Shown in pieces: positions 6,214-35,300 of a DNA stretch of 64,000 nt (position 1 is the stretch's first letter; each line of letters opens with the position of its first letter). Below the pieces are notes generated by a model. It was not told where the DNA came from and did no database searches. It saw nothing but the letters and a program-made list of their open reading frames with translations. Source of the stretch: Macrostomum lignano (taxonomy: Eukaryota); assembly GCA_002269645.1 (NCBI GenBank), contig NIVC01000641.1, positions 62,001-126,000 of the forward strand. The letters are read 5' to 3'. A program made the translations under genes and the position numbers.

Positions 6214-9200
6214 ATGGATTACAACGGAGAGTATTAAAAATTGTCAGAGAAGGCTCGAGTCATTCCTGAGAGAACTATTCTAGTTGAAAATGTCACCAGC
6301 TAGCCGAATGCAATTCATCGCTTTTCCTCCCCCAAAAAGTCTCCTCAACCAAATTCAGTACCGATGAGGGGCCACATATCAAGCATTTATTCAAATACTC
6401 AAAGACCTCACTTCTCCCAACTGTTTGCCTCCGCAGCGGAGAGCGAACTCAGAGGTGCTTCCACCGCACCGGCTCCGTCTCTGACACGGCCCGAGCGTTC
6501 CTTGAAAGCACCAGCATCCGCGGAGTTGGCAAGATCCTGAAGAGCCAGAGCAAGTTCCTGCGCAGACTGTGGGCCCTGTTCGTCCTGGGATCCACGTCGC
6601 TGCTGTTCTACAGCGCGTTCAAAGTCACCATCGACTACCTGCAATACGACGTGAACATTCAGACTCGCCTGGACATAGATGACGCCACCCCGTTCCCGGC
6701 GGTGAGCATCTGCAACAACCAGCCGTTCTCGGAGCGCGCCTACGAGGAGTGGTCGGCAAAGCGGATCAAGTCGCCAACGGTGTTCAACAGGGAGCTGAGG
6801 CAGCGCGGCCTCAAGCTGATGCAGGATCCCAGCATGCCGGACGTGTACGCCAAAGTGCGCAGCGGACAAGCTGATGAAAAGACGATGGCAAAATTTCACC
6901 AGCAAATGACGAACAGCATGAAGGCGCTGGTGGCCACGCTGTTCATGGACTCGTCGCGGCTGTACTATCAAAACCTATCGCCGGATGAGGCCGCGAAGCT
7001 GGGCCACGAGCGGAACAAGTCGATAGTTGACTGCATCTTCAAGTACAACTCGCAGCAGGTGCAGGGCACCAAGGGATGCTACGACAGCATGATCAAGGTT
7101 ACCAGCTTTAGCCACCCCAACTACTTCAACTGTCTGACGCTCGAATTCGACACGGAGAGGCTCACAGAGGTGCACAGCCTCACGCTGATCATGTGGCTGG
7201 GGCCGCGGGAAAACTACGACATCAGACATCGGCAGGGCTTCTTGTACGACATCTTTGAACAGGCGTATGGGCTTCGGGTGTCCATTCACGAGCCCTACAG
7301 CCACCCCAGGGTGAGCTGCAGATATAAACTCTTTGCTGAGAGGCTTTTGTTATTAGTCCACCCAATCCTCACCTACCCAATCCTCACCTACCCAATCCTC
7401 ACCTACCCAATCCTCACCTACCCAATCCTCACCTACCCAATCCTCACCTACCCAATCCTCACCTACCCAATCCTCACCTACCCAATCCTCACCTACCCAA
7501 TCCTCACCTACCCAATCCTCACCTACCCAATCCTCACCTACCCAATCCTCACCTACCCAATCCTCACCTACCCAATCCTCACCTACCCAATCCTCACCTA
7601 CCCAATCCTCACCTACCCAATCCTCACCTACCCAATCCTCACCTACCCAATCCTCACCTACCCAATCCTCACCTACCCAATCCTCACCTACCCAATCCTC
7701 ACCTACCCAATCCTCAACTACCAAATTCTCACCTACCCAATCCTCAACTACCAAATTCTCACCTACCCAATTCTTACCTACCCAATCCTCACCTACCCAA
7801 TCCTCACCTACCCAATCCTCACCTACCCAATCCTCACCTACCCAATCCTCACCTACCCAATCCTCACCTACCCAATCCTCACCTACCCAATCCTCACCTA
7901 CCCAATCCTCACCTACCCAATCCTCACCTACCCAATCCTCACCTACCCAATCCTCAACTACCAAATTCTCACCTACCCAATTCTCACCTACCCAATCCTC
8001 AACTACCAAATTCTCACCTACCCAATTCTTACCTACCCAATCCTCACCTACCCAATCCTCACCTACCCAATACTCACCTACCCAATCCTCACCTACCCAA
8101 TCCTCACCTACCCAATCCTCACCTACCCAATCCTCACCTACCCAATCCTCACCTACCCAATCCTCACCTACCCAATCCTCACCTACCCAATCCTCACCTA
8201 CCCAATCCTCACCTACCTAATCCTCACCTACCCAATCCTCACCCTCCCCACTTTTCGATATCTTCAACCATCTCAGCCTTTTCTCCTCGATCGCCAACGA
8301 ACCCCATACCGCATTCGCTATGGAGCGCGTGCGTCCCTATTTGCCACTAATTGGCCAGACAAACCTGTAAAGTCTCCGCTTCCTTTGCCGCCGAATAAAT
8401 TCTTGTCCGAAGCGCGCAAGCAGCATAAAAAGTTGAAGACAAGAAGCAACTATGCCGGCTCGCGGGAAAGCTGAGAGAGCCACTCATGAAGGCTCTCAAT
8501 CATTTTCCGGCAGCGGTGAACAGCTCGGGAAAATAAAGCCATAAAATAGCCAATGCGCCCGATAAAAAACGTATCGGCTGCTTATCCGGCTTCAACCAGG
8601 AGCCGGAGGCACTTCACCCACATGGAGTGCTGTGGCTGGCGTGACTCCATCGGCATCGCTTTTGTTCCTCACAGCCGCTGAGCTCCATCTTCTCGGGAAA
8701 TCCATGCCGGCTGAGCAGGCCAGAGACGAGAGACAGAAAGGAGTTAAGCAAGCAACTGTGAAAAAGTCCGCGGGGGTTCGAGAAAAAGGAAGCTGGAATG
8801 AATCGATGACGAAGAAAATAGGGGTGGGTGTCCATTAGCAGCCACCGGCGGGCTGGGAGGCTGCAGCAGATAACATGGCTGCAATTCAGCACGTGAGAGA
8901 CGCAGCAGGTTTCCGAGTGATTCTTCTCCCACACCTTGATTCTGTGAATCCCCCTGCAATCCTCTGCAGTTCTGCCTGCCTACATTTTCCTTTAGTCTTC
9001 CGTATACAGCCCCCCCCCTCCGCGTTGGTTCGCTCCACCCTCAACTTTTCACCTCTCCGGAGCGGCGCCGCCAATCTGGAACGGCTTCCGCAGGCATTCC
9101 GCATGGCTGCACTGATGAGCTTTGACAATAACAAATTCTAGTCCAACTTTCTCGTCTTCTGCAGCAGATTGGGGCAACAGGCTCAGAATGCTCGCCCCCA

Positions 9201-11881
9201 TTGCGACTCAGGAGAGTCGCAGCTCCTGCATTTTCTGCTATTGAGCTCAAAACGCATGAAACATTAATTAGGCAAATTGCTGCTCCTAATCCACTTTTTG
9301 CTGCTAGTTGCCCGCCGTCCATCGGAGCTCTGGGGGGGGGGCGGCTTTGACTGACAGATTCATGAGACAATCTGAACTCCGCCCCATCAGCGAGGCATTC
9401 AGAGCGGGCAAGAATAAATGGGAAAAGAAGCTCGATTTCGCTAATCAGACGGACAGAGATCCGATAAGAAAAATGAAAGTCAAAGACGGGAGCTTAAATT
9501 CTAGTCGATATTCTCAGAGCGACTCGAAATGCAGAGACATTGGCACAGCCGGATAGCGCGGTGGAGCGTGAACTCTGCCTTATTGAGTTTTGTCTCGCGT
9601 GCCTGGCCGCTTATCGAACCGCGCGCCAGAGAGCTCCGATGGCTTTGCCGGCAGACGGATTTCCCGTTGCTCAACCGGTGGTTGAGTGAAATTCCTGGCT
9701 GAGATGAATCGCGTTCACTGTTCAGCCTGTGAAGCTCGGAAACAATTGCAACAGCGATCCTGGCTGCTCACAAAACGCCACTTACTGCACTTTCACTTGA
9801 TCGCTAACTAACCAGATGGTGCTCAAGCTGGACCATCGCTAACTACCCGATGGTGCTCAAACTGAACCATCGCTAACTAACCCGATGGTGCTCAAGCTGG
9901 ACCATCACCAACCCGATGATGCTCAAGCTGAACCATCGCTAACCCGATGGTGCTCAAGCTGGACCATCACTAACCCGATGGTGCTCAAACTGAACCATCG
10001 CTAACCCGATGGTGCTCAAGCTAGACCATCACTAACCCGATGGTGCTCAACCTGGACCATCACTTACCCGATAATGCTCAAGCTGAACCTGTTAAAGCAC
10101 ATTAAGCGCCATGCTTTACAGTAATAATTCACTATTTTTAGTCAATCTCTGAGCTGAAATTGTATTTATAATGCCACCCTGGAACCCCCAGATCCTGGAA
10201 CAGGGCATCCAGACTGAGCCGGGCAAGATGAACGAGATCAATTACCAGCCAGTCCGCTTCATCCGGGCCAACACGCCAAAGAATCCGTGCGTCAGCGCTG
10301 AAGATGAGCGTCAAAGTTTTCGAAAATTTGTCGACTTTGGAAAACTGTTAGTTAAGCTTATGCTGGTCTCGTTTTTCTCCAAATTTACCAAATGTAGAGA
10401 AGGGGGTTGGCTGCGGTAGGAGAAGGGGGGTTGGCTGGGTAGGAGAAGGGGGGTTGGCTGGGGTAGGAGAAGGGGGGTTGGCTGGGGCAGGAGAAGGGGG
10501 TTGGCTGCGGTAGGAGAAGGGGGGTTGGCTGCGGTAGGAGAAGGGGGGTTGGGCTGGCTGCGGTAGGAGAAGGGGGGTTGGCTGGGGCAGGAGAAGGGGG
10601 TTGGCTGCGGTAGGAGAAGGGGGGTTGGCTGCGGTAGGAGAAGGGGGGTTGGCTGCGGTAGGAGAAGGGGGGTTGGCTGGGGTAGGAGAAGGGGGGTTGG
10701 CTGGGGTAGGAGAAGTGGGGTTGGCTGGGGTAGAAGAAGTGGTTTTGGCTGAGTCAAGGACCACTAGGAACACTTCGTTCTAGTCTAGTAGTCCTTGGAC
10801 TGGGGTAGGAGAAGTGGGGTTGAGTGGGGTAGGAGATTGGGGTAGGAGAGCTATTATTTTCTTGTAGCTGGTTCTTAGCTTCAAAACACGAACCAAGGGG
10901 TTTTACCTGTAGTTCTCCAGGCTACAGTCGCACTGACCTGCTCAGAACCGCATACTCCGCAGGTACGCCTACGACCAGGAGCTTTGTCTGAACTCCCGAG
11001 TCCAGGAGGCCTTCCTCAGCTCCTGCCGCTGCCTCTACGTGGAGATGCCTTCTGTGACGCCTCCGAACAAGACGCACCCATACTGCGCCCACCTGGACGA
11101 GAAAATCTACGAGAGGGCCGAATGCGCCAGCACTCTGGACCAGAGGAGAATCCGGCAGGCCTTCGAGGCCAGCGAGTGCCTGCCCAGATGTCAGCAGCTC
11201 AGCTACGAGAAGGAGCTGTCCGTGACCAAGTGGCGGGACACCCAGTGGATGCTGTACTGGATCAAGGAAGTCTCTGAGAAGTGGGCCTCGCACATCAACA
11301 GTCTTGAGAAGAGAAAAACACCGGAGGCGGAGTTCAGAAGCAACCTCGAGCAACTGCTGGAATACTTCAGGATGCAGAACATCACGGATCCGCAACTGCT
11401 GCGCGGCAGCGACGCCGGCACCTTCCAGTTTAACGACAGCTTCACGTACGTGGTGGTGAAGCGCCAGTCGAACAACACTCTGGTGCGCCAGGAGAAGATC
11501 GTGCTGACAATCAACGCCCTGTTCAGCCGGATCGGCGGTCTGTGCTCGATGTACATCGGACTGACTCTGGCCTTCTTTGTCGAATGCGTCGAGCTGCTCT
11601 ACCGAATGGTGTTCGACCGACGCTCCGAGTCGGCAGCGGCGGCTCGCGGCCAGACGCGAGATTCGTCGGTGGAAGCCGTGGATCTCGGACTGGACGAGCA
11701 GCAGCGAGTCCTCGACGTCACCGACGCCAGCCGTATAGGCCAGGATGAAGCTGCGGAGAAGCTGGACCTGCTAGAGGCTCGCGGTAGGCCGCGAGACCCG
11801 GCGACTGGAGCTGCCGGGTCGTCAAATGGATGCGACGACTTTGTGTGGATCCGGCAGGGCAGGAATCCGAGTGGCCTGTGA
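6214..11881 (+). CDS. DEG/ENaC (ASIC/pickpocket-like) amiloride-sensitive channel family subunit, about 654 aa, 4 exons
   Basis: Exons 6214-6230, 6437-7310, 10192-10346 and 10963-11881 have compatible phases. Pre-TM1 FLESTSIRG, TM1, post-TM1 FPAVSICN, SHPNYFNCLT, cysteine-rich thumb (YAYDQELC..Q...SSCRC) and TM2 LFSRIGGLCSMYIGLT..VECVEL. AATAAA near 11915. The short first exon and the exon 3 donor are less certain. Confidence 0.9.
7360..8245. repeat. 15-bp intronic minisatellite (CACCTACCCAATCCT)n
   Basis: About 58 copies starting about 50 nt after the donor at 7311. It produces the ILTYP repeat in ORF 6651-8474. Confidence 0.97.
9800..10090. repeat. 31-35-bp intronic tandem array with an internal inverted repeat
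   Basis: About 9 units of CCGATGGTGCTCAAGCTGGACCATCGCTAAC, with stem CGATGGT/ACCATCG. Confidence 0.9.
10395..10850. repeat. G-rich intronic minisatellite of about 24 bp (GGTAGGAGAAGGGGGGTTGGCTGC)
   Basis: Tandem copies begin about 50 nt after the donor at 10347. Confidence 0.93.
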
Positions 11882-14743: not shown

Positions 14744-15217
14744 TCATTGCTGATCCGGGTCAAACTTCATGGCGAACTCGAAGTCCCGATAGGTGACTCG
14801 GCCGTCAGCGTCGGCGTCCACCTCGGCGAAGGCGCGGTCAACGGCGAAGCCGCCGGCAGCCAATCGCGGCGCAAGGAGACCGACAGCGCGGCGCAGGTCC
14901 TCGGCCCGGAGGAAATTCCGGCCGCCGGAGTCCAGCGCGGCAAAGGCGTGCCGGAGCTGACCATCAGCGTCCAGACGCGACATCCGAGCTGAAGCCAGTC
15001 GCCGGAAGGTGTCGAGAGTCACGAACTCATCAGTGGGGCCAGCAACTGCGGGCTGCGACTGCATGATGAGGTCGAGCTCCCGGCGGCAGGGCTTGTAGCC
15101 AAAGAGCTCGATCCAGGCGACCTTCACGTCACCACGGCAAAGCCGGCCATCCGAGTCGGCATCAGCATTCGCAAAGGCGTCATCAATGCGGAGCTGCCGG
15201 GTGGCCTCGCTTACCAT
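14744..15217 (-). CDS. EFCAB11: EF-hand calcium-binding domain-containing protein 11 (intronless CDS, about 157-160 aa)
   Basis: EF-hand loops DADSDGRLCRGD, DSGGRNFLRAED and DADADGRVTYRDFE, plus the family-typical LFGYKP motif. The start may be ATG 15226 or 15217. Confidence 0.85.
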   Translation of the reverse strand: MVSEATRQLRIDDAFANADADSDGRLCRGDVKVAWIELFGYKPCRRELDLIMQSQPAVAGPTDEFVTLDTFRRLASARMSRLDADGQLRHAFAALDSGGRNFLRAEDLRRAVGLLAPRLAAGGFAVDRAFAEVDADADGRVTYRDFEFAMKFDPDQQ

Positions 15218-18200
15218 GGAGTGCATCAGTGCGCTGCGGGTGGCAGAGATTATTAGCTTTATGATAGGGCTAGGGTAGGGTTAGATAGGGTCTTGGGTAG
15301 AGTTATACATAATTGAGAGAACAATCTGATTAAAGCTGTAACTGTATAGAACTATGCTTTATTTTAAACTATAGCTAAATCAAACATTTTGATTCGCAAA
15401 AAAGTTTGATAAATTGAATACAAATTCAACTGAATATTTAAATAATATTGACAATTAAATTGCATCTTTTTTATTAATATGTTTTACTCACTGATATAAT
15501 TAACTGTTCTGTACTAAAAATACAGTGAAAAAACTATGTTAAATGAACAAAACATGTCACATTTAAATTTAAATAAGATATTTAAATAAAAACCTGTAAG
15601 TAAGCTTATATAGAAATTATAGAAATATAGAAACTAATTGATGGTAAAATTGATTAGAATATCTATTTAAATAACCATATTAGCTTAAAATCTAATGCAA
15701 AAGCAAGAGTTTTTGGTTAACAATTAAATGATGTAGTAAAGTAGGCACTAATATGGTGCAATAACAACAAATTGAAGAGGGCTAAGCATATTGTTGTATA
15801 TAATATAATATTTTATTGTTTTCTGTTAAATAGGCCAACATAAAATTAAGCTGTCTTCGTCCGTCAGACAGTAATCATACAGATTTACAGTCATCTGTAT
15901 GGCGATAGGCCTAGCATTTATTAATAGTTTAACAATTTTTAAGTTTAGTAGATTGTAACAGAAAGTAATAATGTTTTCGAAAAAGAAAGCATTTCATTGT
16001 AACTTTAAAGATGCTTGTAACAGCTCCAATTGTCATATTGGGTAAAAGTTTGAGCAGCAAAACAATTCTACTTTAAAGAGCATAGCTAAGCCTAAAACAC
16101 TTATTATGCAGATATGCAGTTCTTTTAAAAAGACCATGTTAGAAACGGAGGTGAAGCTTTGATGAAAATACATGTTATAACAAATGCACACAGGTGAAAA
16201 TTAGGAAAAAGTGTATTTTCTGACGTTCGGGGACTCTATTTTGTCTAAATATTTTTTCTGAGCTAACAACCAAGCAGAGAGAGATAAAAACTTTAATTTT
16301 GAACTAATCTGTGTGTATAAATTAGCACTTCGATTGTTGCCTTTAAGCGCAGTCCCAAGTCACAAGTGGGTCTAAAATTTGGTGCACCAGAGAACGTAAA
16401 CAGTTCGAGCACAGGCTTCATAGAGGCTAATTAGACTAACATCATGCGCTTAGCGGGAAAGCAAAACAAAAAACTAAAATGTACAAAATGGAAAAGTCTT
16501 AAAACGCTAACGAGACATATATATGTGCTGTATGTATTGTACAATCAACCGAAATCAAGAGAACTCGGGTAGTTATAACTGGATTAATTTTTGCTATTGG
16601 CGCGTGATTTTTTTAGCGTAAAAAGGGATGAGCTTAGCAAAATGCGATAAAGGCGGAAAACTACATGAATAGTAATTCAGATCCGTTTAAAAAACAGGAC
16701 AGACTGGCTCGTATTTGCCTTGTCAATACAGTTCTTTATGTACCCAACGTAAAGAATTGTGCCCATGATTTTTTGAAGAAAGTCACACAGAGCATTTGCT
16801 ACCGTGAGTTCTTTAAAGCCCAAAAACCTACACGGAAGCTATACTAATATATTGTTTTGATTGCAATATCAAAATCCGTATCCGACAACATTTACATTTA
16901 ACCGTTTTTCTGTATGGATTGTCTCATTGAAGATGCATTCGTTCAACTTGGATGCACATTAGCTGCTTGAAAGTCATTTGTTAATACTTCTTCGAATTTG
17001 GATAGCTTACAAAAAACAAGTATAAGAATTTGGAATCTAGTAGGTGTGTGGCGTATTATGCAAAGAAAATGTTATAAGCAGAAGTTCCCCAAAGAATAGA
17101 TTTTCTAGGGGCAAGCATGTAGCATTGTGAACTGCGCTGTTACAGTGTGCTGTCAACACTACTGTCTAACTTAATTATCACCAGCGGCTTTGACTTTAAG
17201 CTGTTTGTTCGCGCCACGGAAACGACAGTTTTGAGAGCCCTGAATGCGGGCAAAACAAGCAGCCTGCCATAGCACTGTGTGACATAGCTATACGACAAAT
17301 GCAAATAACAAGTCTTTGAAAGACTTCTGCTTGTTGCAAACGACTTATTTCTGAAATTGAATTACTCTCGTGTGGACTATCGGAACTAACTTAAAATCCG
17401 GATGCTTTAGTTCTGTGCAGAGGCGTTCATTCAGAGTGAGAAATGCGAATTCCAAGTCAGTTCGCTGAATGGAAAAGAGATATACATTTGCATGTTAAGC
17501 ATAGGGAAGACTTGCTGCAGGCTTGCATGTCGCAACTCACTGCTGCCACAGCATACCCTCCTATAGATTTATTGAAGTTCGTTTTTTACTATGCAAGAGA
17601 CTTAACTCGAATTAGCTAGCGAAAAAATTTGTGAACTTCAAAAAGAGTTGAAATTATTGAAGTGCTGTCTAATACAAAACAGTTTTATAAAATTGCTGAA
17701 CATTTTGTTAATCCTTTAAGCTTTTATGCAGACAACGGAGGACAGCAACTTTAATGTTGGCACTATATTGGTAATAGCTCAGCTTCCAAACAAATAATTG
17801 GTCTATTGACATGCTGAAAAGTATTATTGGAGAGCAGCAAACAGTCCCAGAATGCAGCTGTGACCTATAAATGCAGCTCGAAGCGGAGAAATATCTAGTT
17901 AATATAGAATGCCAAGGCAGCCCTCGCAACTGAAGCCGCTCAGCGGGCACCTACTTTTGTCCCATAGACATCAGCAGCTGCCATAGTCTATGGGCCAAAA
18001 GGACATTTGATACATTTGTACGCCTGGTACATCTGCTTGCATTTTAAAGCTGAATCAGGGAAGCCTCTATCGTCACTGCGCTTTGACCATAGAGGCTTCC
18101 TTGGCTGAATTCAAAGCAAATACCGACTCAGTAGGCTTCTTAAATGTTCCTAATTTTGTCTTAAAATAAAGTCAACACAAACTGCAGGGAATTCTTGATG

Positions 18201-18679: not shown

Positions 18680-21600
18680 TCAATTCACAAAGCAGGCCGT
18701 CAGGGCCATCGCAGCGGCGGCCCACAGAAGCTGTCGCAGCGGCCCGGCGGCCAGCCAGCTCGAGTCCGACTTTGACCTCCCGATGAGTTGACAGCGCTCA
18801 GCCTGCGGAGACTCCGAGCAGAGAGTGTGCACGAGAAACCTGCGGAGTGGGCGAGATGTCTGTCTGATGCGGGGAACAGACCGAAACAGAACAGAGTTAA
18901 ATGAAAAAGACAGAATACTTATACTCTGCACTAGCACAATAACGCTCACAGCGGATTGTCCTGACAGTTGACCCGTACGCCCTTCAACAGCAGCCGCTGC
19001 CGCAGTCGCAGCACTGACGGATCCATCCGACATGCGCTGTAAGCAGACGCCAGACGCGGATCGTTGAGCGAGCGCAGCGGGTAGACATCGACCTGGCTGA
19101 TCCGCGGCGGGCTGAGCTGGGGCAGCTCGAACTGGCCGAAGATCCTCAATGGATTTTCAGGGCGAAAAAAATTATAGGCATTGTAATTTTTTGATTGTCA
19201 GTCTCACCCACCCGTCTAATTATAAACCCCAGCCTCCCCACCTGTCTAATTATAAACCCCAGCCTCCCCACCTGTCTAATTATAAACCCCAGCCTCCCCA
19301 CCTGTCTAATTATAAACCCCAGCCTCCCCACCTGTCTATTTATAAACCCCAGCCTCCCCACCTGTCTAATTATAAACCCCAGCCTCCCCACCTGTCTAAT
19401 TATAAACCCCAGCCTCCCCACCTGTCTAATTATAAACTCCAGCCTCCCCACCTGTCTAATTATAAACCCCAGTCTCCCCCACCTGTCTAATTATAAACCC
19501 CAGTCTCCCCCACCTGTTCAATTATAAACCGCAGTCTCCCCCACCTGTCTAATTATAAACCCCAATCTTCCCACCCACCTGTCCAATTATAAACCCCAGT
19601 CTCCTCCATCTGTGCAATTATAAACCTCAAGTCTCTGACATGCCTAATGGTGAGACGAAGACTAATTTGACAAGAACTTCGGTGGAGGTGGATAACTCAC
19701 GAGGTCTCTCGGAAGGGATTCGCCACAGATGCGTTCAGTAAGACGGACACTTTTCCTGTAGATTTGCCTGCAAACTTATTGATTGTCAAGGCAGAAGATT
19801 TTTGTTTATTCAGTATTGTTCAAATGTCATAAGAATTAACTGTGCTCTCCAAACCAGGATACTGTGAGCATAAAGTGAAGATAAATCGATTATTCATTCT
19901 CTTCTTAGCGCACTCAAATAAAGATGGGCATTTTCAAATATTTCAAGTGCGATAAGAAATTCTTCACGTTCTGGATAAGTGAGGTGTTTGACATTAGCAC
20001 TTATTGCCATGATAATCCTTTGCAAAAGATAACATCTCGAATTTAATAAGATTTTCTGGAATTCTCAGAGCCCCAGCTCGTCAAACCTCACCGACCCGCG
20101 TCTCTCTGTTTGCCTTGTCTGCAGAATCGAAATTAGAATCAACGGCGATGCTAACTATCACGCCTAAAATTACAAATGCAGTGAAAAATAATTGCAGCTT
20201 AGGGCGGCGAGTCCAGGGATTTGCTCCAGTCCCGGTGCTGCAGTTTTTTTAGCTGCTCAAAATTGCTGAAGAAGCACCTGGCAGATGACTGAAGACGATT
20301 TGCCGAAAGGATCTCCGTGTTATAAGTTACAGACACTGCCACACCAATCGGTACTCAGCAATGCACTCAGCAGAGACACTGCCACATCATTCGCTACTCA
20401 ATCATGCACCCAGCAGAGACACTGCCACACCAATCGGTACTCAGCAATGCACTCAGCAGAGACACTGCCACACCAATCGGTACTCAGCAATGCACCCAGC
20501 AGAGACACTGCCACATCATTCGCTACTCAGCAATGCACTCAGCAGAGACACTGCCACACCAATCGGTACTCAGCAATGCACCCAGCAGAGACACTGCCAC
20601 ACCAATCGGTACTCAGCAATGCACTCAGCAGACACTGCCACACCAATCGGTACTCAGTCGTGCACTCAGCAGACACTGCCACACCAATCGGTACTCAGTC
20701 GTGCACTCAGCAGACACTGCCACACCAATCGGTACTCAGCAATGCACCCAGCAGAGACACTGCGACACCAATCGGTACTCAGCAATGCACCCAGCAGAGA
20801 CACTGCCACACCAATCGGTACTCAGCAATGCACCCAGCAGAGACACTGCCACACCAATCGGTACTCAGCAATGCACTCAGCAGAGACACTGCCACACCAA
20901 TCGGTACTCAATCATGCACCCAGCAGAGACACTGCCACACCAATCGGTACTCAGCAATGCACTCAGCAGAGACGCTGCCACACCAATCGGTACTCAGCAA
21001 TGCACTCAGCAGAGACACTGCCACACCAATCGGTACTCAGCAATGCACCCAGCAGAGACACTGCCACACCAATCGGTACTCAGCAATGCACCCAGCAGAG
21101 ACACTGCCACACCAATCGGTACTCAGCAATGCACTCAGCAGAGACACTGCCACACCAATCGGTACTCAATCATGCACCCAGCAGAGACACTGCCACACCA
21201 ATCGGTACTCAGCAATGCACTCAGCAGAGACGCTGCCACACCAATCGGTACTCAGCAATGCACTCAGCAGAGACACTGCCACACCAATCGGTACTCAGCA
21301 ATGCACTCAGCAGAGACACTGCCACACCAATCGGTACTCAGCAATGCACTCAGCAGAGACACTGCCACACCAATCGGTACTCAGCAATGCACTCAGCAGA
21401 GACACTGCCACACCAATCGGTACTCAGTCGTGCACTTAGCAGAGACGCTGTCTGCACTAAAATTATGCATAGCAACAAACTCTGTTGCTCACCCAACTGG
21501 AAGCGGCAATCCAGAAAGGCAAGGTAAAGTTGGTGCAGCTCTCCCGACGCGTCACCTGACTGTTGGTTGATCGCCTTCTTCTCAGAGAAATTTTACTACC

Positions 21601-24600
21601 TCTGGTGTTGACGTCGCAGCGGTAGTTGCACCAGTCCATGGAGTTCATGATGAACCCTGCGGGTCGCATCGTTCAATGAAACATCAATTATTTTTACTTT
21701 AAGCGCGTTGCGATATTCACTGATTTCAGCCCTCAATCCCGAACGCCATTTCAGGAAAGCGCCGTTTCTTTTAAGGGTGGAAGGGGCTCGAACCCCAACG
21801 GCCTTGGGTTGTTTTCCTGGTAAAACAAGCTGAAGGCTTGTGTCACAAAAATAACGGCTAGGTGAGCAGCTCAACTCACCGATCAGAGTCTCCTCCAATG
21901 GGAAATACTCGGGCATATCGCGCACCCTGATAACCAGGCTGTAGGCGGTGCCTGACCAGAACACAAACTGCAAATTGTGTGTTGAGAAGCATTGCGGAGC
22001 GGTGTCTGAATAAATTTCATTGTTACATTGTGCGACATGTGCGTTGCTCTCTCAGGCTCATCAGGTTAAACCTGATAAAGATCAGTTTCCGTTTTACTGC
22101 CAGCAGATCTACCTTGCAGCAACTGACTAACAATTAGTTACTATGGGGATCAGAGGTGCGAACCCATGAAAGCCAGCTCGCAGTAGTGAACCCTCTCGAT
22201 CCAGCTAGTAGAGTCACCTTTGAAGGAATTGCTCTAACACCACTCATCACTCGCCAGTACAGCACATGCAGCACGTACTTCCTGGATCTAGCTCGTACTT
22301 CTAAAAACATTCAGAAAATAAATTACTTATCATATCTGCTATTGCACTTCTGTTATAAACTGGCATCACCTATAATATTAATAATAATTGATTACACCTG
22401 CGTTAATTGGCTGATGTGCAACCGACAGCTCAGCCGCAGCTATTGCGTACGGCTGCAAGGATTGAGGGGTCGCCACGCACACCCTCAATTAACCCAGCTA
22501 ATGGTAGTACCCATTTTACAGCTGGGTGAACTGAATCAATGCAGAGTTAAGTGTCTTGCTCAAGGACACAAATTGTTCCAGTGGGATCGGGAAAGAACCC
22601 CCGACCTTTCAGTCGTGAGTCCTTCGCTTTAACCACTAGGCTACAACCCCCTATGCTGGCCATGCGATTTCGAAGTTGACATGGTGCACGAAAACAGTCA
22701 TATTAGTCACACCTTGTCAACTGGAATTTCGTGATTGGCCATTTGCAGCAGCCCCGCAAAATCATCAGGCTCCGGCCGACAGTGGTCCGGTTGCAGGGCG
22801 ACGAAGCGAAACTCTTCCCACAGCCGGGAGCAGTTCTTTCGGCTGGATCTGCAAAGTGCGGGTTTCCAATAGCTAAATATTTGCTAGAATAGCAAGGCTA
22901 CATTGTGCACTTAAAGATTAATATACCTGCTATTTTCCTGTCTCAAGAGAGATTGAAGACTTGGGAATCCTTATTGACTCAAGCAGAGCCCGTGCATAGC
23001 TCTCTAGTCGAACGTAAAATTATCTTTTACAAGCAAACGCCTTCGGGCTTCATAGATAACCAGTCAGGCTCAAGGCCGCGGACTTAGAGGCCATGAAAAA
23101 CATACATGAAATACATACATACATCGTTCCATCGAGTGGCCTTTTGCCTGGCGGTCCAATACCTAGCTGTGCCATTGTTCAAAATGTCTATGGTAATTTA
23201 AGTTTAGGCAATGGCATTCAAGCAATGACCGGTCATTGTTTAAAATTGACAGTATAGCAATTTACCGGAATATCATTTTAGAAAACAAACAAGTCTAAGA
23301 GCGTAAAATGAAATAGTCTATGGTTGTAAGTGGGGGCTTCGCCCCACACCTTCATTTCCCCTCCCCATTCCTATCCTGGATGGACAAATTGACAAATGAA
23401 GTTAGCTGAAAGTGATAAAACACAATTCTGACTTCCAGACAACCCCCATTATCAACCCCGCAAATTGAGTGATAGAGAAAGCGCGAATTAGTTGATACAA
23501 CGAGCTGTCTATGGCCCGAACTCTAAGTGCATACCCGGAAATTCCTTGCTACGACCGAAGGGAGTTGATAGTGAGGTCCGAGGAACAATTTTGATGACGA
23601 ATTTCGATAAAGTTTCGTCCCTTGATTTGTGCCAGGTGTCAAAATGCGTAGAAAAGATGGAATTTTACAATGAAATAACAAAAACGGAAATTCGATACCT
23701 CTTTTGTATTCGAAGAATGCCAGAAATTTTTAAAACGGCCCTTTTCGGAGAAAATGTAACCCGCAAAAATAAGCAACTGCTTTAAAAAATTTGCGCATGG
23801 CCAATAAGTAGAGTCCCGGAAGGAACGAAAATCGGCTCCACTTTAGACTCCTCTATTGGCATTCTATGCATACTCGATATTCTCTGCTTACAACACTTAT
23901 TAAATCAGTAACGAATCCGATTATTGCACTTCTAAGTAACTGTCACCCATAGACAAGACTTGAATTTTCCCCCATAGTATCTGCTGAGTCGTGCGACTAA
24001 TTTCCCCCACTGATATGTAGAACACTCGGCAATATTGGCGCCGGACTACTCAACCAGCATTTTTACGATCATTCCCTCAAAAATTCGGTAAATGAGTTTA
24101 GGCGAAATGCGACGAACGTGTTCCCAACTCTTGTCTGGAGCTGATGGGGTCTGATATTTGCATTATTAAATTGCATTTTCCTTTGTTTCGGGAGGCGGAC
24201 ACAGAAGCGATTCTTAATAAAATAGTGCAAATCCACCATCGAATTGCTTTGTTTAAGTCAACAAAGTTGAGCATGAGATTCAGCCAAAAATAGTTAACTA
24301 TTAACTTCATTTAGGATGTTTATAGTAAGTTTTTATCTCCCAATAATTCGTGTTTAACCATTTTTTGGGCTCCAGTCAGCAACTCAATTCACTCAGCTCC
24401 AGAAATTTGCTAATGGCACCAATCAAACTGGACAATGAAGTTAATGGAGTAAATGAAACTTTTCCTGACAGTGCAAACAACAGAATATTGCTGTTTAATT
24501 ACCGTTTATTAACACACGCTATAAAATCCTTTCGCTCAGATGGTTCCCTCATCATGTGTCGCAATCAGTCAGACTTAGTCCGTCATGATTCCTCCCAGTT

Positions 24601-27600
24601 GCCTCATCGTCTTCTTCGCTGCTCTGCTCGCTGCTTCAACCACTGAAGCTGCCGATGTAGCCTCGCCAGACGCTGCCGTGATGGCGGCGCTGAAGCTTGG
24701 CACCGACTACAACAGGGCGGTCCGGCCGCCCCCGGACAATGGCACCGCAAACACTGTGACCTTGGTCATCTTTCTGTTCAGCCTCGTCAATGTGGTGAGT
24801 TGATATTTTCCGAAGCTCTAGGAGACATTGATTTAATTATTACTAGTCCTTGTCGATTTCACAGGACTCTGCGTCTCAGGAAGTGACACTGCAGTTTTCT
24901 CTTTCGAAGGTCAGTACTTGCTTGTATTGATTAGGGGGGAGAGATGCTTTGTCTAACTGGATTTCATTACGAAAAGAACCTGCTATAAAGAAGCTTTTCG
25001 AAACCTTGCCGCAGCAATGGCTCGACGCTCGCCTATCATGGATGACGAAGTCTAATTCGTCATTGGGCAGAGTGCAGAAAATATCCGTTCCCTCAAAAAT
25101 GGTCTGGATACCGGATGTTTCTGTTGACAATGTGTAAGTTGAGGCCCCGTTTTCTGAATCTCGCGGCAATTTAATAATGATGTTTCCGTATCTATTACAG
25201 GTTGGGGATAAAGGATATTTCACTGGATGAGCCACCTGTTTCAGTTTTTAACTATGGCTTGGTTCGACACGAGAAAGTGCTGCTTGTCACGTTTAAGTGT
25301 CAGATGGAGATGCAATATTTTCCGTTTGACAGTCAGAAATGCGGCTTTAGCATCAGGTCTAAAAATTCACCTGACCAAACAAAGCTGAAGATATATTTCG
25401 ACAGAGACTTTCCTCCGGAAAAATACTTGTCAAGGAACAACGAATTCTGCATCAAGAGAGTATTTTTAGAGGAGCATCGATTGGATGTAGTTGATGCAGT
25501 TATTCTTGTGCTTAAATTTCAGGTAAGAAATCATTATGTTCGCTAAACTTTCTAAGGATGATTTCGTAGCTCAGCGGTAAAATGTGTCTGACTCTCGCAA
25601 CAACACGGGTTCGATTCCGTGATTCTCACACCTGTGATAATCAATATCAAAGGCGCAGAGAATGTACCTGTCTCAAATCTGACGATTAGCAAGTCAGCTG
25701 GCCGCTGTACAGCCTGTGTGAGCGTGCTGTATGAGTGCGTCACTGTGCACAGTATTGGTGCGTGCTTGCATGTGCTCAGGAGTCAGCGGAGATGTCACTG
25801 AAGGCGTTGCGCCAGGGTGTCCACAGCATCCTGCGATTATTATTATTGACTTACGGGACTTCAGGCTTCTTTCAACCTATAGAGCCTATCTATAACTCAT
25901 ATGAAATACACATTTTAGCCCACTCATTAGAGCCGAAAGTAGGATCGTGGACCTGATGATTCAATCATTAAATGCAAACGTAGATTAGTTTATACACATT
26001 TACCATTTGATTTTAGCTCTAGGGACTGTGCAAGTTGCTAAACTTCGCGCGGAACTGATCATTTCGCGCGTTCAAAAAGCCTCGGTAGTCTTTTGAATGG
26101 ACCAATTTGAACACATCGACCTGAAAATATTTGATTGCATTGCTTCTTTTAAGAGACGGTCGGCGTTCTACGTGACGAACCTGCTCTTTCCGAGCATCCT
26201 CCTGCTCGCCATCTCTGCATTCGCATTCCGAATGCCTCCAGACTGCGGTGAGCGAGTCTCCTTCAGCATCACAATCGTGCTGTCGATGTGCGTGTTCCTG
26301 CAGCTGGCTGGCAACTACACGCCCACGCAGAGCGAGTCCGTACCACTCATCAGTGAGTCGCGAGATATTCGTTCTGCTGACCAAATCTCTGTACGTACAT
26401 GTACGCTCATGTGGTCACAATTTCCATTGCAGCTTGGTACTTCAGCATCGCAGCAGTGATGACAATTCTGAACGCGCTTTGCAACATATTCGTGCTGAGG
26501 TGTCACTCCAAGCAGCACAACAGCGCTCACGTCAGCAACCGGCTGATCCGTGCTCTATTCCTTAACCGACTCGTGACTGGGAGGAAACCACAGGTGCATG
26601 CTGCTCAAGATACAGCTGACCAGACTGAGGTCTCTGATGGAGACATCCCGCCAAGTCCCCTGCAAGACAATGAGTGGAGCATTGTTGTAGCGTCAGCCGA
26701 CAAAGTGTTCTTTGCGATGAACGTCTTCGTCACTGTGATTACAGCCATACTCACGACTGTATTTGCAATCAGTGCATATTCGGACAATTGCATTGAAGGA
26801 ACCTACTCTTCGGTGGTTGATTTGGTCAAAGATGAATAATTTCTCCTTGTTTATGCTATCATTAACCACGATAGAAATATTTTGCCATCGCTAGCAAAGG
26901 TGGTCTGGTCACAATTTTGGATGATGAATTTCGATAAAGAACTGCTCTAAAATTTTACGTCTGGTCCCTTAATTTGTGCCAGGTGTCAAAATGCGTAGAA
27001 AAGACGGAATTTTACAATGAAATATCAAAAACGGAAATTCGATACCTCTTTTGTATTCGAAAAATCTCAAAAAAACATCCAAAACGGCCCTTTTTCAGTG
27101 AAAATGTAACCCGCAAAAATAAGCAACTGCTGTATGTAGCAAACAATCTAATTAACTTAGATGATTAAAATCACAGGGAAATTATAGAATGATATTTGGA
27201 TTTTTGTTTAAATGCGTCAATTTTTATCTGCCCGTAATACCCAATTGAAGTACTAATTATGTACGAAATTTGGTTTTTTGCAGATAGCTCGAAAACTTTG
27301 CATACAAACGTATTGCGAAAATACTCCCATGCACTAAATCTATCAATTATCTACAAAATGGCACCTTATGTATCCACGGATTGAATGAAAACTGAGGGAG
27401 CAGGATGAGGGCGTGGGGGGCGGAGACAAAACAGTTTTTTTGGGGGCGGAGTTTTTCTTTGGGGGCGGAGTTTTTCTTTGGGGGCGGAGCCTTTAAAACT
27501 CAAACTTAAAGGAGACAAAGTTTTATTCTATGGCAAGATATACCGAGCATAGAAACAATTTAGTGCGCTTTCGATGTTTTTCTGTCTAATTTGAGGAAAT

Positions 27601-29417: not shown

Positions 29418-29816
29418 TCATTCGTCTTTAACGTCGCCAACAGCGGCTACAGCCTCAATCTCCACCAGGGCCTGCTTGGGCAAGCCAGCTGCCTGGTAGC
29501 AGGCCCTGGCTGGGAATGGCTCGCTGAAATGCTTGGCGTAGATGGCGTTCACCCTGGCAAAGTCGTTCATATCGGCCAGCAGCACCGTGGTCTTCACCAC
29601 CTTGCTCATGTCTGAGCCGGCCGCTTTCAGCACAGCCGCCATGTTAATTAGCACCTGCTCAGCCTGCGACTCAACATCTGGCCCGGCCATCTGCATGGTG
29701 GCAGGGTTGAGGCCGATCTGACCAGACATGTACAGAGTCTGGCCGAGCTGCACTGCCTGGCTGTATGGCCCAACTGCAGCGGGAGCAGATGTGGTTGCAA
29801 TGATTTTGCGAAGCAT
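29418..29816 (-). CDS. RIDA: RidA/YjgF/UK114 family 2-iminobutanoate/2-iminopropanoate deaminase, 132 aa, intronless
   Basis: APAAVGPYSQAV, YMSGQIG, VVKTTVLLADMNDFARVNAIY, PARACYQ (catalytic Arg) and LPKQALVEIEAVA. Confidence 0.95.
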   Translation of the reverse strand: MLRKIIATTSAPAAVGPYSQAVQLGQTLYMSGQIGLNPATMQMAGPDVESQAEQVLINMAAVLKAAGSDMSKVVKTTVLLADMNDFARVNAIYAKHFSEPFPARACYQAAGLPKQALVEIEAVAAVGDVKDE

Positions 29817-32395: not shown

Positions 32396-35300
32396 ACTTT
32401 CAAAAGACAGCGGCCTACATTCACCAGTTCCTATTGAAGCTGGACTTCACGCCGGAATGCGCCGAAGTTCGCGACGCTCTCAACCTGGCTCTTCTGTACA
32501 TGCAGAAGTACTACCGCTCCATGCGCAGGCGGGTGGAGACCCGCGGCAGGGAGACGCCGTCACTTCAGAGCGGCGCTTCCTCGGCTCGAGGCCTGCAGTC
32601 GCCGATGACGCCGTTCAGCGACTCGCCGGACAAGTTCCAGTGGCGCTGGCCGGAGGTCGACAGTCGAAGATTCGGCAACGTGGCCGCAACGCAGGACTCC
32701 GGCATGCAGAGCGGCGCGCCGCTGTCCGTGACGGTCAGCCGGAATGGCGATCTCGAGACGCTGAAAACGCTGTTTAAAAAAGGTGAGCTGCACTTTTCTC
32801 CACAACGAAAATAATTAATATTTTCCTCTAGAGAAGAATTCTAGCATCATGGGATTACGGTTTCCAAAGCTTTTCGAAAGCCTGATCGGCTGCAAATATA
32901 AAGTTAATATAAATACTCGCAGGAGGACTGTCGGGATGTGGTTTTGGGATGACGACACCGAATGGGGGGCAATGCTGCCCATCACATGACTCCTGAGCAC
33001 CAGTGTTGGGCAAGTTACTCAAAAAAGCAACTTGCATTACTGTAACTTAAGTTACCAATTTTTAAAAAGTAACTTACGTTAGCCTAGCTAGTAACTTTAG
33101 ACAAAAACCTGGTAACTTTTAAGTTACTGTCCGTTACTCACTTCCGATACCCATGTTATTACCAAAATTTTCACATTGCACATTTTTTCACATTGTTGTT
33201 ACCGAAATTTGCCATTGGGCAGTGGGATTAACCGATTAACAGACAGAGACAGGAATTGGTGACACGATGTGAGGCAAGTAGAAGGACCAATGGGCAATGG
33301 CAATCAATAATGAAAATTATAAATGATAAAATAAACGAATATCAATAATTCAATAGAGTAAAATAAATAGAACCGTATAAAATGGTGTAGTGTACTGCAG
33401 TGCCAGTGGAGGGACTTGTGGAGGCTACAGGTGAATTTCTCTCTTTGGTTGTTTGTTTGAATCAAACTTGAAAATTTTTAGTAACGAAAATGAAAGGCGA
33501 AAATATTTTACCGAAATTAACAAAGTAAAACATGTTTCAAGTATTTCTTCATTAAATAAGCGCAATACCATGATACTATTCACTTAATTTTGAATTTAGG
33601 AATGAAAAATGCAAAAACATGTGACAACCGGCGTACTAGCTAAGCATTTCAGTTTCAAATTTAAATATTGCGATTGTTGCAAAGTAACTGTAATGGACTT
33701 TCGAAATTTAGTAACTTACCGTTACTCCGTTACTAAAATAAAAAAGTAACTTTAAAAAGGAACGCTTTACGAAAAAGTAACTTGCGTTACCATTTGCAAG
33801 TTACTCGGTAATGGAAGTGCCCAACACTGCTGTGCGCATACAAGCGCGCGAATACTGTACACAGTCACGCACTCGTGCACACGCTCATTCAGGGTGTACA
33901 GCGGCCGTAAATTTATAATCTTCGAATGTTCGAGTATAATGTTCGAGTATAGGTATTCGTACTTCAATTGTCCTGTTAAAAATACATGCAAAACCAGTGT
34001 TACCAGCTTACTAATCATAATCAATGCGTCTATACGCTTTCCTTTAAAATACATCGCTGTCCATTTGGCTAGAGTATTTCGTGTCACATTGGAGAGACAC
34101 CAAGGGAGAGACGATCAGACAGAGCTAATTGCCTAGTAAAGCTTTACTCATACTCGGTGCGATGATGAGTATGTTGCTAGATGGAGCGTGAGCATTAGCC
34201 AGCTGCCGACTTTGAACTGCATGATAGGCACAAAAATTCAAGCCAAACATTGTAAAAGACTCGAAATTGGCTTGAGAATCTAATCAAATTCATTTCCAGA
34301 CCCTCGCACCATTGACGAGCCCGACTGTTTCGGCCGCAGTCCGCTGATGCACGCGGCGCAGCACAACCAGTTCGCCGTGGCCGAGTGGCTGCTCCGCTCC
34401 GGGGCCAACGTCAACGCCTGCGCGCACGGTTCGATACCTGAATACTACTATTAGTATCTTGATTATTTAGTCTGTTTAGGGTTGCTACTTTTATACAAAT
34501 GAAACTCAAATCCACTCCTCTGATTCCACAACAGGCCACTCTGATTCCACAACAGGCCACTCTGAATCCACAATGGGCCACTCTGAATCCACAACAGGCC
34601 ACTCTGAATCCAGAATAGATCACTTTAATTCCACAACAGGCCACTCTGAATCCACAACAGGCCACTCTTAATCGACAACAGGCCACTCTGAATCCACAAC
34701 AAGCCAGTCTGAATCCACAACAAGCCAGTCCGAATCCACAACAAGCCAGTCTGAATCCACAACAAGCCAGTCTGAATCCACAACAAGCGTGTCTGAATCC
34801 ACAACAGCTACTCTGAATCCACAACAAGCCAGTCTGAATCCAGAATAGGTCACTCTAAATCCACAACAGGCCACTCTGAATCCACAACAAGCCAGTCTGA
34901 ATCCACAACAAGCCAGTCTGAATCCACAACAAGCCAGTCTGAATCCACAACAAGCCAGTCTGAATCCACAACAAGCCAGTCTGAATCCACAACAAGCCAG
35001 TCTGAATCCACAACAAGCCAGTCTGAATCCACAACAAGCCTGTCTGATTCTACAGACGCCCCGCCCCACCCCAACCCTCCAGACCGGTCAACGGCCCTTC
35101 ACGTGGCGATCAGCCGTGGCCACGCGGACCTGGCGGAGCTGCTGGTAAAGTACGAAGCCAGCCCAGACGAGCGGGACGTGCTGGGCCGGGCGCCCATGCA
35201 CTGGTCGGTGACGTCAACCAGCACCGAGTGCTTGAAGCTGCTTTTGCGCCACCGGGCGGATCCGCGGGTTCGGGACGCGGACCAGGCCACGCCGGCGATG

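Follow-up and report, generated by a model that had tools for sequence, protein, structure and literature searches.

In a 64,000-nucleotide stretch of the genome of the flatworm Macrostomum lignano (GenBank assembly GCA_002269645.1, contig NIVC01000641.1, positions 62,001 to 126,000 of the forward strand; hereafter the window, in whose numbering all coordinates are given), we identified a six-exon gene on the + strand, from the ATG at 24585 to the TAA at 26839, that encodes a Cys-loop receptor subunit in which the classical binding site for acetylcholine (ACh) is gone from both faces. On balance, its sequence leads us to favour, with modest confidence, a working gene for the subunit of a non-cholinergic cation channel, which would be formed within a family of Macrostomum receptors and would be gated, or set, by a cue other than ACh or serotonin (5-hydroxytryptamine, 5-HT). 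An earlier sequence-only reading of this DNA had placed the gene at exactly these boundaries and had described its product as an orphan receptor that could be non-cholinergic, a proposal that the loss of the site on both faces supports well.

Gene, pore and binding site

The coding sequence, joined at splice sites read from the region, comprises 1302 nt and translates into 433 amino acids (aa). Each of its five introns begins with GT and ends with AG, the ten splice sites are canonical, and there are no stops or frameshifts in the 433 codons. Because a stop-free run of this length over six spliced exons exceeds what chance would produce, we regard it as a gene and not as a statistical pattern. 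Its elements are as follows, where the alignments include the M. lignano paralogues described below and M1 to M4 are the transmembrane helices:

24520..24526, + strand: TATAAAA, a candidate core promoter element, 59 nt 5' of the ATG (read from the sequence)
24585..24794, + strand: exon 1, with the ATG, the signal peptide (MIPPSCLIVFFAALLAASTTEA), the N-terminal helix, strand beta1 and the N-glycosylation sequon N52-G-T (GT donor at 24795; paralogue alignment)
24865..24909, + strand: exon 2, a 45-nt microexon (DSASQEVTLQFSLSK) for strand beta2 and loop D, with S82 (24898-24900) in the loop D Trp column (AG acceptor, GT donor, alignment)
25015..25133, + strand: exon 3, QWLDARLSW ... WIPDVSVDN, with loop A and D123 (25126-25128) in the loop A Tyr column (splice sites, alignment)
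25201..25522, + strand: exon 4, with loop E, the Cys-loop, loop B, loop F, strand beta9, the loop C turn and strand beta10 (splice sites, alignment, paralogue models)
25298..25342, + strand: Cys-loop in exon 4, from C158 (25298-25300) to C172 (25340-25342), with FPFD (alignment)
25361..25363, + strand: loop B in exon 4, K179 in the Trp column (alignment)
25448..25450, + strand: beta9 in exon 4, the clade-specific C208 (alignment)
25481..25492, + strand: loop C in exon 4, a 4-residue turn, L219-V222 (alignment and paralogue models)
26154..26352, + strand: exon 5, with the pre-M1 R233, M1, the M1-M2 loop PPDCGER, the pore helix M2 and the first part of M3 (splice sites, alignment)
26250..26252 and 26280..26282, + strand: pore positions in exon 5, -1' E265 and 9' L275 respectively, followed by 16' Q282 and 20' N286 (alignment)
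26433..26839, + strand: exon 6, with the remainder of M3, the MX helix (NRLIRALFLNRLV), a short intracellular loop, the MA-M4 helix and an extracellular tail (alignment, paralogue models)
26789..26791 and 26837..26839, + strand: C418 in the tail of exon 6 and the stop codon TAA (read from the sequence)

The ectodomain contains two N-glycosylation sequons. A 45-bp exon lies at the place equivalent to exon 2 in the genes of vertebrate nicotinic acetylcholine receptors (nAChRs) and 5-HT3 receptors.

The hallmark of the Cys-loop superfamily is present as C158-QMEMQYFPFDSQK-C172, with the 13-residue spacing and the FPFD core. Residue columns were assigned in a MAFFT L-INS-i alignment of human/bovine alpha1, alpha3, alpha7, beta2 and beta4, mouse 5-HT3A, invertebrate nAChR-like proteins and the Macrostomum paralogues, the vertebrate references being drawn from HMMER alignments; among the paralogues, W87, W94, C158, F165, P166, D168, C172, R233, P245 and others are invariant. 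A search of the PDB gave 272 matching sequences at E <= 0.001, and all the matches listed are ligand-gated ion channels of the pentameric type (pLGICs). The paralogues carry the Pfam domains PF02931 and PF02932, and their AlphaFold2 models are composed of ten strands plus M1-M4. The pore-lining helix (TM2) reads GERVSFSITIVLSMCVFLQL, with the pore motif D-C-G-E-R and a Leu at 9'. The Glu at -1', which is E265 in PPDCGER, is also found in 160 of the 177 nearest relatives, a set of receptor domains from outside Macrostomum, excised from the 150 best-matching representatives, that serves as our comparison set throughout. From this residue and the absence of a filter of the Pro-Ala-Arg type, we infer that the channel would be cation selective. 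The sequence-only reading had called both the Cys-loop and a cation-type GER/9'-Leu TM2 intact, which agrees with C158-x13-C172, E265 and L275; its figure of about 55 aa for the M3-M4 loop is a fair one, the segment measuring ~48 aa if counted from one predicted helix to the next and ~60-65 aa if counted from one hydrophobic core to the next.

The binding site presents the opposite picture. The Trp of loop D (TNVW-L), which occupies its column in beta2, beta4, alpha7 and the Taenia beta-like protein, is replaced by S82; the Tyr of loop A (PDxVLY-N) is replaced by D123; and the Trp of loop B (GSW-xY) is replaced by K179. Loop C has neither vicinal cysteines nor a YxCC motif, and the span from beta9 to beta10 is 24 residues long against a median of 29; the span of beta2 exceeds it by ~5 residues, and those of alpha1, alpha3 and alpha7 exceed it by 8-9. 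In place of the 433-aa protein itself, two paralogues were modelled with AlphaFold2, namely P0001 (84% identical) and P0003, and in both models a 4-residue turn joins beta9 to beta10. The predicted local distance difference test (pLDDT) score of the P0001 model is 75-88 in the ectodomain and 85-92 in the transmembrane domain, the mean values of the models being moderate (62-64). Because the paralogue models show this turn, loop C is best described as a bare hairpin turn; and because the aromatic residues of loops D, A and B are replaced and loop C is shortened without YxCC, both faces of the ACh/serotonin site are gone. The former pocket is lined by D123, K179, E-E-H-R-L-D of loop C and R-H-E-K of loop E, and it has no cap.

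These observations bear out what the sequence-only reading had said of the replaced loop A Tyr (WIPDVSVDN, residues 116-124), of the replaced loop B Trp (RSKNS, residues 177-181) and of a very short loop C without YxCC (EEHRLDVVDAV, in the beta9-beta10 hairpin). Its broader claim, that the whole ACh aromatic box had been lost, is now strengthened by the change of the complementary-face loop D Trp to S82, which it had not mentioned.

Three familiar identities were considered for the protein and rejected. An nAChR alpha subunit is discarded by the lack of a vicinal Cys-Cys pair and by D123 and K179 at the loop A Tyr and loop B Trp columns. A non-alpha (complementary) nAChR subunit is discarded by S82 at the loop D Trp column and by a clade separate from the alpha and beta subunits. 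A 5-HT3 receptor is discarded on its site residues in pairwise HMMER and MAFFT alignments with mouse 5-HT3A, where TSWLH faces RSKNS, IWYRQ faces FSLSK and INEF faces VDNV in the candidate.

Two further observations concern the immediate surroundings of the gene. A direct repeat of ~170 nt, whose copies at 23617-23784 (+) and 26964-27134 (+) are 90% identical and spaced 3347 nt apart, brackets the receptor gene, and exactly two copies of it are present in the 64-kb window; the pair could be a dispersed element, or it could be what remains of a ~3.3-kb tandem-duplication unit, as paralogues elsewhere lie in tandem. Inside intron 4, a tRNA-like stretch (GTAGCTCAGCGG...GGTTCGATTCCG) at 25566-25637 yielded no ARAGORN call and no Rfam match at E <= 1, and it is probably a decayed fragment of a tRNA-derived short interspersed element.

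A receptor family of Macrostomum

The five closest homologues of the receptor are M. lignano entries in UniProt. A profile of the candidate's exon translations and five M. lignano paralogues was searched against 1.84 billion representatives and retrieved 17,105 pLGICs. Above 380 bits, the matches come from M. lignano only (P0018, P0019, P0020, P0002, P0004 and P0005), leaving aside P0021, which exceeds this value only as the sum of four tandem domains, has the loop B Trp and lacks the Cys characteristic of the clade. The next matches are M. lignano P0050, which keeps the loop B Trp (209 bits), and then proteins named 'alpha9/alpha10-like' of Lineus, Lingula and Pecten. When homologues were sought again by word index, this time with the paralogue profile, the only additions were two mollusc sequences and P0018. 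Judging from these sequences, the family is confined to M. lignano among the matches examined and partly amplified by tandem duplication: it has at least 10 copies (about 10-12), some of them in tandem arrays. A tblastn search of the 64-kb window found no second receptor copy; the evidence for tandem copies comes solely from database models of the paralogues. It should be noted that the public M. lignano models of the family are mostly wrong: P0001, P0018, P0019 and P0020 fuse two to three tandem copies or a neighbouring gene, and nearly all paralogue models skip the 45-nt microexon that codes for beta2 and loop D.

Among solved structures, the best sequence match of the candidate is 5-HT3A (E = 1e-39, 140 bits), followed by beta2 (125 bits), alpha1 (121 bits) and alpha7 (95 bits). 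As sequence comparisons go, these scores look weak: a typical mollusc nAChR, Mytilus P0010, reaches 237 bits to alpha7 and alpha1, and a typical flatworm non-alpha subunit, Taenia P0008, reaches 392 bits to human beta2. Relationships were also evaluated in a neighbor-joining tree (not maximum likelihood), computed from 282 columns with an anionic-type sequence as root and 200 bootstraps, and sampled without cephalopod chemotactile receptors (CRs). The Macrostomum family, made up of M. lignano proteins only among the sequences sampled, is monophyletic in this tree at 92% (its core at 98%) and sits on a long branch outside the group of alpha1, alpha3, alpha7, beta2, beta4 and the Taenia beta-like protein, where P0008 clusters with beta2/beta4; a pairing of the family with 5-HT3A has a bootstrap of 22% and is not reliable. 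Phylogeny, which the sequence-only reading had named as a check on its proposal, therefore reveals no grouping with ordinary non-alpha subunits, both by the scores to beta2 (125 bits against the 392 of P0008) and by the separate clade at 92-98%. Foldseek comparison of a paralogue model with the PDB does not discriminate, as non-alpha muscle subunits, alpha7, alpha4beta2 and 5-HT3A are all matched at E ~1e-17 with TM scores of 0.4-0.49.

The family has a signature with four parts: N-E-F-C after the beta9 aromatic, a Cys just after M4, a beta9-beta10 span of 24-25 residues, and the TM2 pattern G-E/D-R-x-S/A-x-x-[IV]-[TA]-I-[VL]-L-S-M-x-V-F-L-Q-L. All four are present in the candidate, as they are in P0001-P0005 and P0018-P0020. 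The first cysteine, C208 in the candidate, follows Phe207, the residue in the column of the beta9 'GEW' Trp, and it is found in 10 of 10 Macrostomum receptor pieces against 0 of the 177 other domains. The second, C418 in the candidate, lies one to a few residues after M4 in nine family members with usable C-termini; among unrelated receptors, a Cys anywhere in the final 16 residues occurs in 29%. Because beta9 starts at the membrane-facing base of the ectodomain, where the end of M4 emerges, these data suggest a putative C208-C418 disulfide that would staple the M4 end to the ectodomain's base.

Conservation within the family is very uneven. TM2 is nearly identical among paralogues whose ectodomain identity is only 31-37%; for these more distant paralogues, identity in TM1-3 amounts to 50-83%. 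The loop B Trp is absent from all Macrostomum pieces but the outlier P0050, and its replacements are K, Q, I, R, A and V. Single aromatic residues are nevertheless kept by some members, namely the loop A Tyr by P0003 and P0004, the loop D Trp by one copy in P0019 and the loop B Trp by P0050. The candidate and P0001 are the members most stripped of aromatic residues, and P0001 has also lost the Pro-Asp of loop A.

Selection on the gene was evaluated at the protein level (a relative-rate test and a contrast between domains, not dN/dS). Against P0001, 4 of 90 sites differ in TM1-TM3 (96% identical) and 36 of 173 differ in the ectodomain (Fisher p = 2.5e-4), the four transmembrane changes being conservative (L>F, V>A, V>A and A>I). 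When the differences were polarised with six outgroup paralogues, 17 changes fell on the candidate's branch and 14 on that of P0001 (p = 0.72), that is, without acceleration. As far as protein sequences can tell, this argues for continued purifying selection, and for a constrained rather than a decaying copy.

Gating cue and rival explanations

In the explanation that we favour, strong constraint has preserved the family's pore, its fold and its gating interface (Cys-loop, pre-M1 Arg and M2-M3), and the classical transmitter site has been dismantled on both faces, with loop C cut to a tight turn. With its transmitter site dismantled, the subunit cannot join ACh or serotonin recognition of the known kind. 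It would most likely assemble with itself or with paralogues of the family, its presumed partners, into a pentameric cation channel. A cue acting at the altered subunit interface, which bears charges and lacks a cap, or at another place in the ectodomain would open this channel or set it tonically. Because the pocket is charged and uncapped, this cue would most naturally be a metal ion, protons or a small ligand that carries charge, hydrophobic contact chemicals being less likely.

Ectodomains of such a kind can gate, as illustrated by the proton-gated channels PBO-5/PBO-6 of nematodes, and protons also open ZAC. This last channel, which represents a vertebrate family, is gated by Zn2+ and has an unusually short loop C (PMC11536092). 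Like the candidate, ZAC is a cationic Cys-loop channel without a classical transmitter site, and it provides a model for ion gating of an ectodomain that has no pocket; it is not among the best PDB matches, and the likeness is at the level of the superfamily. A bolder form of the explanation, in which the family would be an independently evolved class of non-transmitter-gated cation channels that open when protons, metal ions or some external chemical act on a charged interface devoid of loop C, and that are stapled by the C208-C418 disulfide, is in our judgement tentative and improbable as it stands.

Several points weigh against the explanation that we favour. First, the deep position of the family among cationic pLGICs has bootstraps of 8-23%; the term 'nicotinic-like' used in the sequence-only reading is thus acceptable for the cationic Cys-loop branch in a broad sense and goes too far in a narrow one, the best solved match being 5-HT3A. 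Second, a silent structural subunit would likewise be expected to have lost the binding residues of both faces. Third, because some paralogues keep single aromatic residues, mixed pentamers could build some site without any contribution from the candidate. Fourth, a collection of 15 billion sequences contains no protein identical to the gene product; the gene has no annotation, and the analysis found no assembled transcript for it.

The alternative that survives best, which we consider possible but rather unlikely, is that of a silent structural (accessory) subunit at a non-binding position, where the agonist sites would be supplied by canonical ACh-binding alphas or by the family members that keep aromatic residues. 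The absence of binding residues on both faces and a loop C as short as in non-alpha subunits would be expected of it. The top Foldseek matches of the paralogue model are the muscle beta1, gamma, delta and epsilon subunits, with 5-HT3A and alpha7 scoring almost equally, and the aromatics scattered among paralogues, the loop B Trp of P0050 and the near-identical TM2 are compatible with co-assembly. Known structural subunits of nAChRs (muscle beta1 and neuronal alpha5/beta3), as well as Taenia P0008, likewise have no vicinal cysteines, a short loop C and no contribution to an agonist site. However, they are close relatives of ACh-binding subunits, and P0008 keeps the Trp of loops B and D, neither of which the candidate has. 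The failure to cluster with ordinary beta-type subunits, by score and by clade, points in the same direction. In addition, the loop B Trp is missing from every core member, which leaves the core family without an obvious 'alpha'; a set of ten or more subunits with a purely structural role would be out of the ordinary; and the clade-specific C208/C418 pair together with the TM2 signature suggests a self-contained type of channel.

The loss of the site has to be seen against the background of other lophotrochozoans. Bivalves have 99-217 nAChR genes in tandem arrays, most of the expanded mollusc nAChR genes lack conserved binding sites, and the principal binding residues survive in only 13 of 132 oyster genes, findings from which a broadened ligand specificity was proposed (Jiao et al. 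2019, PMC6896357). In our comparison set, the columns of loops D, A and B are all devoid of aromatic residues in 25 of the 177 nearest non-Macrostomum domains (14%), which in some cases reflects microexons missing from the gene models, and 39 of the 177 have a beta9-beta10 span of <=26 residues. The aromatic-less cases that could be named are mostly tandem genes of bivalves and gastropods (Mactra, Mizuhopecten, Mya, Tegillarca, Pinctada, Bulinus and Elysia), together with some nematode genes. An nAChR-like subunit without a binding site is, consequently, of an expected kind in a lophotrochozoan, and less singular than the sequence-only reading had implied. What is new here is an independent family in a flatworm, together with its pair of cysteines and with how complete the loss is in the candidate.

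The mollusc orphans, such as P0168 of Elysia marginata, P0039 of Mactra, P0053 of Mizuhopecten and P0047 of Mya, resemble the Macrostomum receptors in being cationic, lineage-specific, often in tandem and in many cases devoid of ACh-binding residues. They belong to separate clades, however, and lack C208 (0 of 177); moreover, descriptions of the mollusc expansions portray them as mostly intron-poor retrocopies, unlike the candidate with its six exons, the ancestral 45-nt microexon among them. The nearest look-alike is P0168, which has no aromatic residue at loops D, A and B, a 24-residue beta9-beta10 span and a TM2 that begins GERVSFSIT, like the candidate; it is without the Cys pair seen in Macrostomum and falls outside the family, and it is a possible case of convergence, misnamed 'alpha-7' by NCBI. 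Mouse 5-HT3A (PDB 6np0 and others) shares with the candidate the GERVSF at the start of M2, but where it has the loop B Trp (TSWLH) the candidate has Lys, its loop D Trp is Ser in the candidate, and the candidate's loop C is a shorter hairpin without an aromatic. Alpo4, an orphan Cys-loop receptor of annelids, keeps a full aromatic cage (F103, W159, Y199, Y205 and W65; PMC10338036), as opposed to none of three positions at loops A, B and D in the candidate.

A further alternative, to which we give less weight and which rests on analogy, is that the gene would encode an environment-facing chemosensory receptor in peripheral sensory cells, as an independent flatworm counterpart of the cephalopod CRs. 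These receptors are found in the sensory cells of suckers and are gated by hydrophobic compounds (CRT1, PDB 8EIS; van Giesen 2020; Allard 2023; Kang 2023, summarised in PMC11526382). The parallel consists in nAChR-type cation channels without ACh binding, an expansion in one lineage and a divergent ligand-binding domain. Besides this precedent (PMC11526382), the proposal could draw on the lineage-specific tandem amplification, on an ectodomain that diverges much faster than the pore and on differences among paralogues at the former pocket positions; amplification and fast ectodomain evolution over a conserved pore are also seen, however, in many ordinary pLGIC families. The analogy fits poorly, because CRs are described as binding hydrophobic molecules (PMC11526382) and the pocket here is charged: the CRs form a cephalopod clade with a hydrophobic pocket, while the candidate has charged or polar residues at the pocket positions and a bare loop C turn that cannot cap a ligand. 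The family is also small, at about 10-12 copies, and no CR structure appears among the best 60 PDB matches.

Finally, it is very unlikely that the gene is a young non-functional duplicate, unexpressed or decaying with its frame still open, because the gene's lack of an annotated or assembled protein in public collections, its position between two copies of the ~170-nt repeat and the missing loop A Pro-Asp of its 84% paralogue P0001 are set against 433 codons free of stops and frameshifts, ten canonical splice sites, substitutions since the duplication that avoid TM1-TM3 (the four found there being conservative) and a rate not raised relative to P0001.

Neighbouring genes and the value of the family

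Other features were observed in the window. Two single-exon neighbours, a RidA-like gene at 29418-29816 (-) and an EF-hand gene at 14744-15226 (-), encode proteins that are exact public entries of M. lignano, in agreement with the flatworm origin that the sequence-only reading had supposed; the cluster of the EF-hand protein includes an M. lignano GenBank protein. By motif, an actin gene lies at 49021-50199 (+) and an S6-kinase-like (AGC) kinase gene at 54725-56882 (+), the last open reading frame (ORF) of which runs into a minisatellite. Two long ORFs at 6651-7350 and 11039-11881 (+) resemble exons of a DEG/ENaC-type channel gene. The first of them runs into a minisatellite with an 18-nt period (7353-8009), and the second has a weak match to the FMRFamide-gated sodium channel FaNaC1 (8on7, E = 2.7e-6). 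Long minisatellites are also located at 1539-2776, 10311-10773, 20285-21570, 34411-35069, 46378-46995, 56300-56882 and 59441-60496, a striking density for 64 kb; they are open in several frames, which gives rise to spurious long ORFs (HLVPP, PILTY and GATNRG repeats). At 61787-62179 (+) there is a Cys-rich ORF (…CRCRLFVFDACSH…LCPVGYSH…) that is like the non-receptor part behind the receptor copy in P0020 (…CQCKLFLFDACSH…LCPSGYEH…), a protein named C-type lectin domain protein in UniProt. The receptor family and this Cys-rich gene family may therefore be neighbours at more than one locus.

Lophotrochozoan genomes contain hundreds of nAChR-like genes that are unable to bind ACh, and for almost none of them is the stimulus known, the cephalopod chemotactile receptors being the best-worked-out invertebrate case. 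If the gene product were a silent partner in ACh-gated pentamers, the finding would be an ordinary one; if the family were an independent class of sensors, it would add a second, flatworm, case in which a receptor for a neurotransmitter became a sensory or ionic sensor. With about a dozen genes, a conserved pore and a dismantled site, the Macrostomum family offers a manageable entry point to this question in a species where RNA interference, in situ hybridisation and transgenesis can be used. Finding its stimulus would reveal how a pLGIC ectodomain without an aromatic box or a loop C cap couples to gating, and whether transmitter receptors have repeatedly become other sensors.

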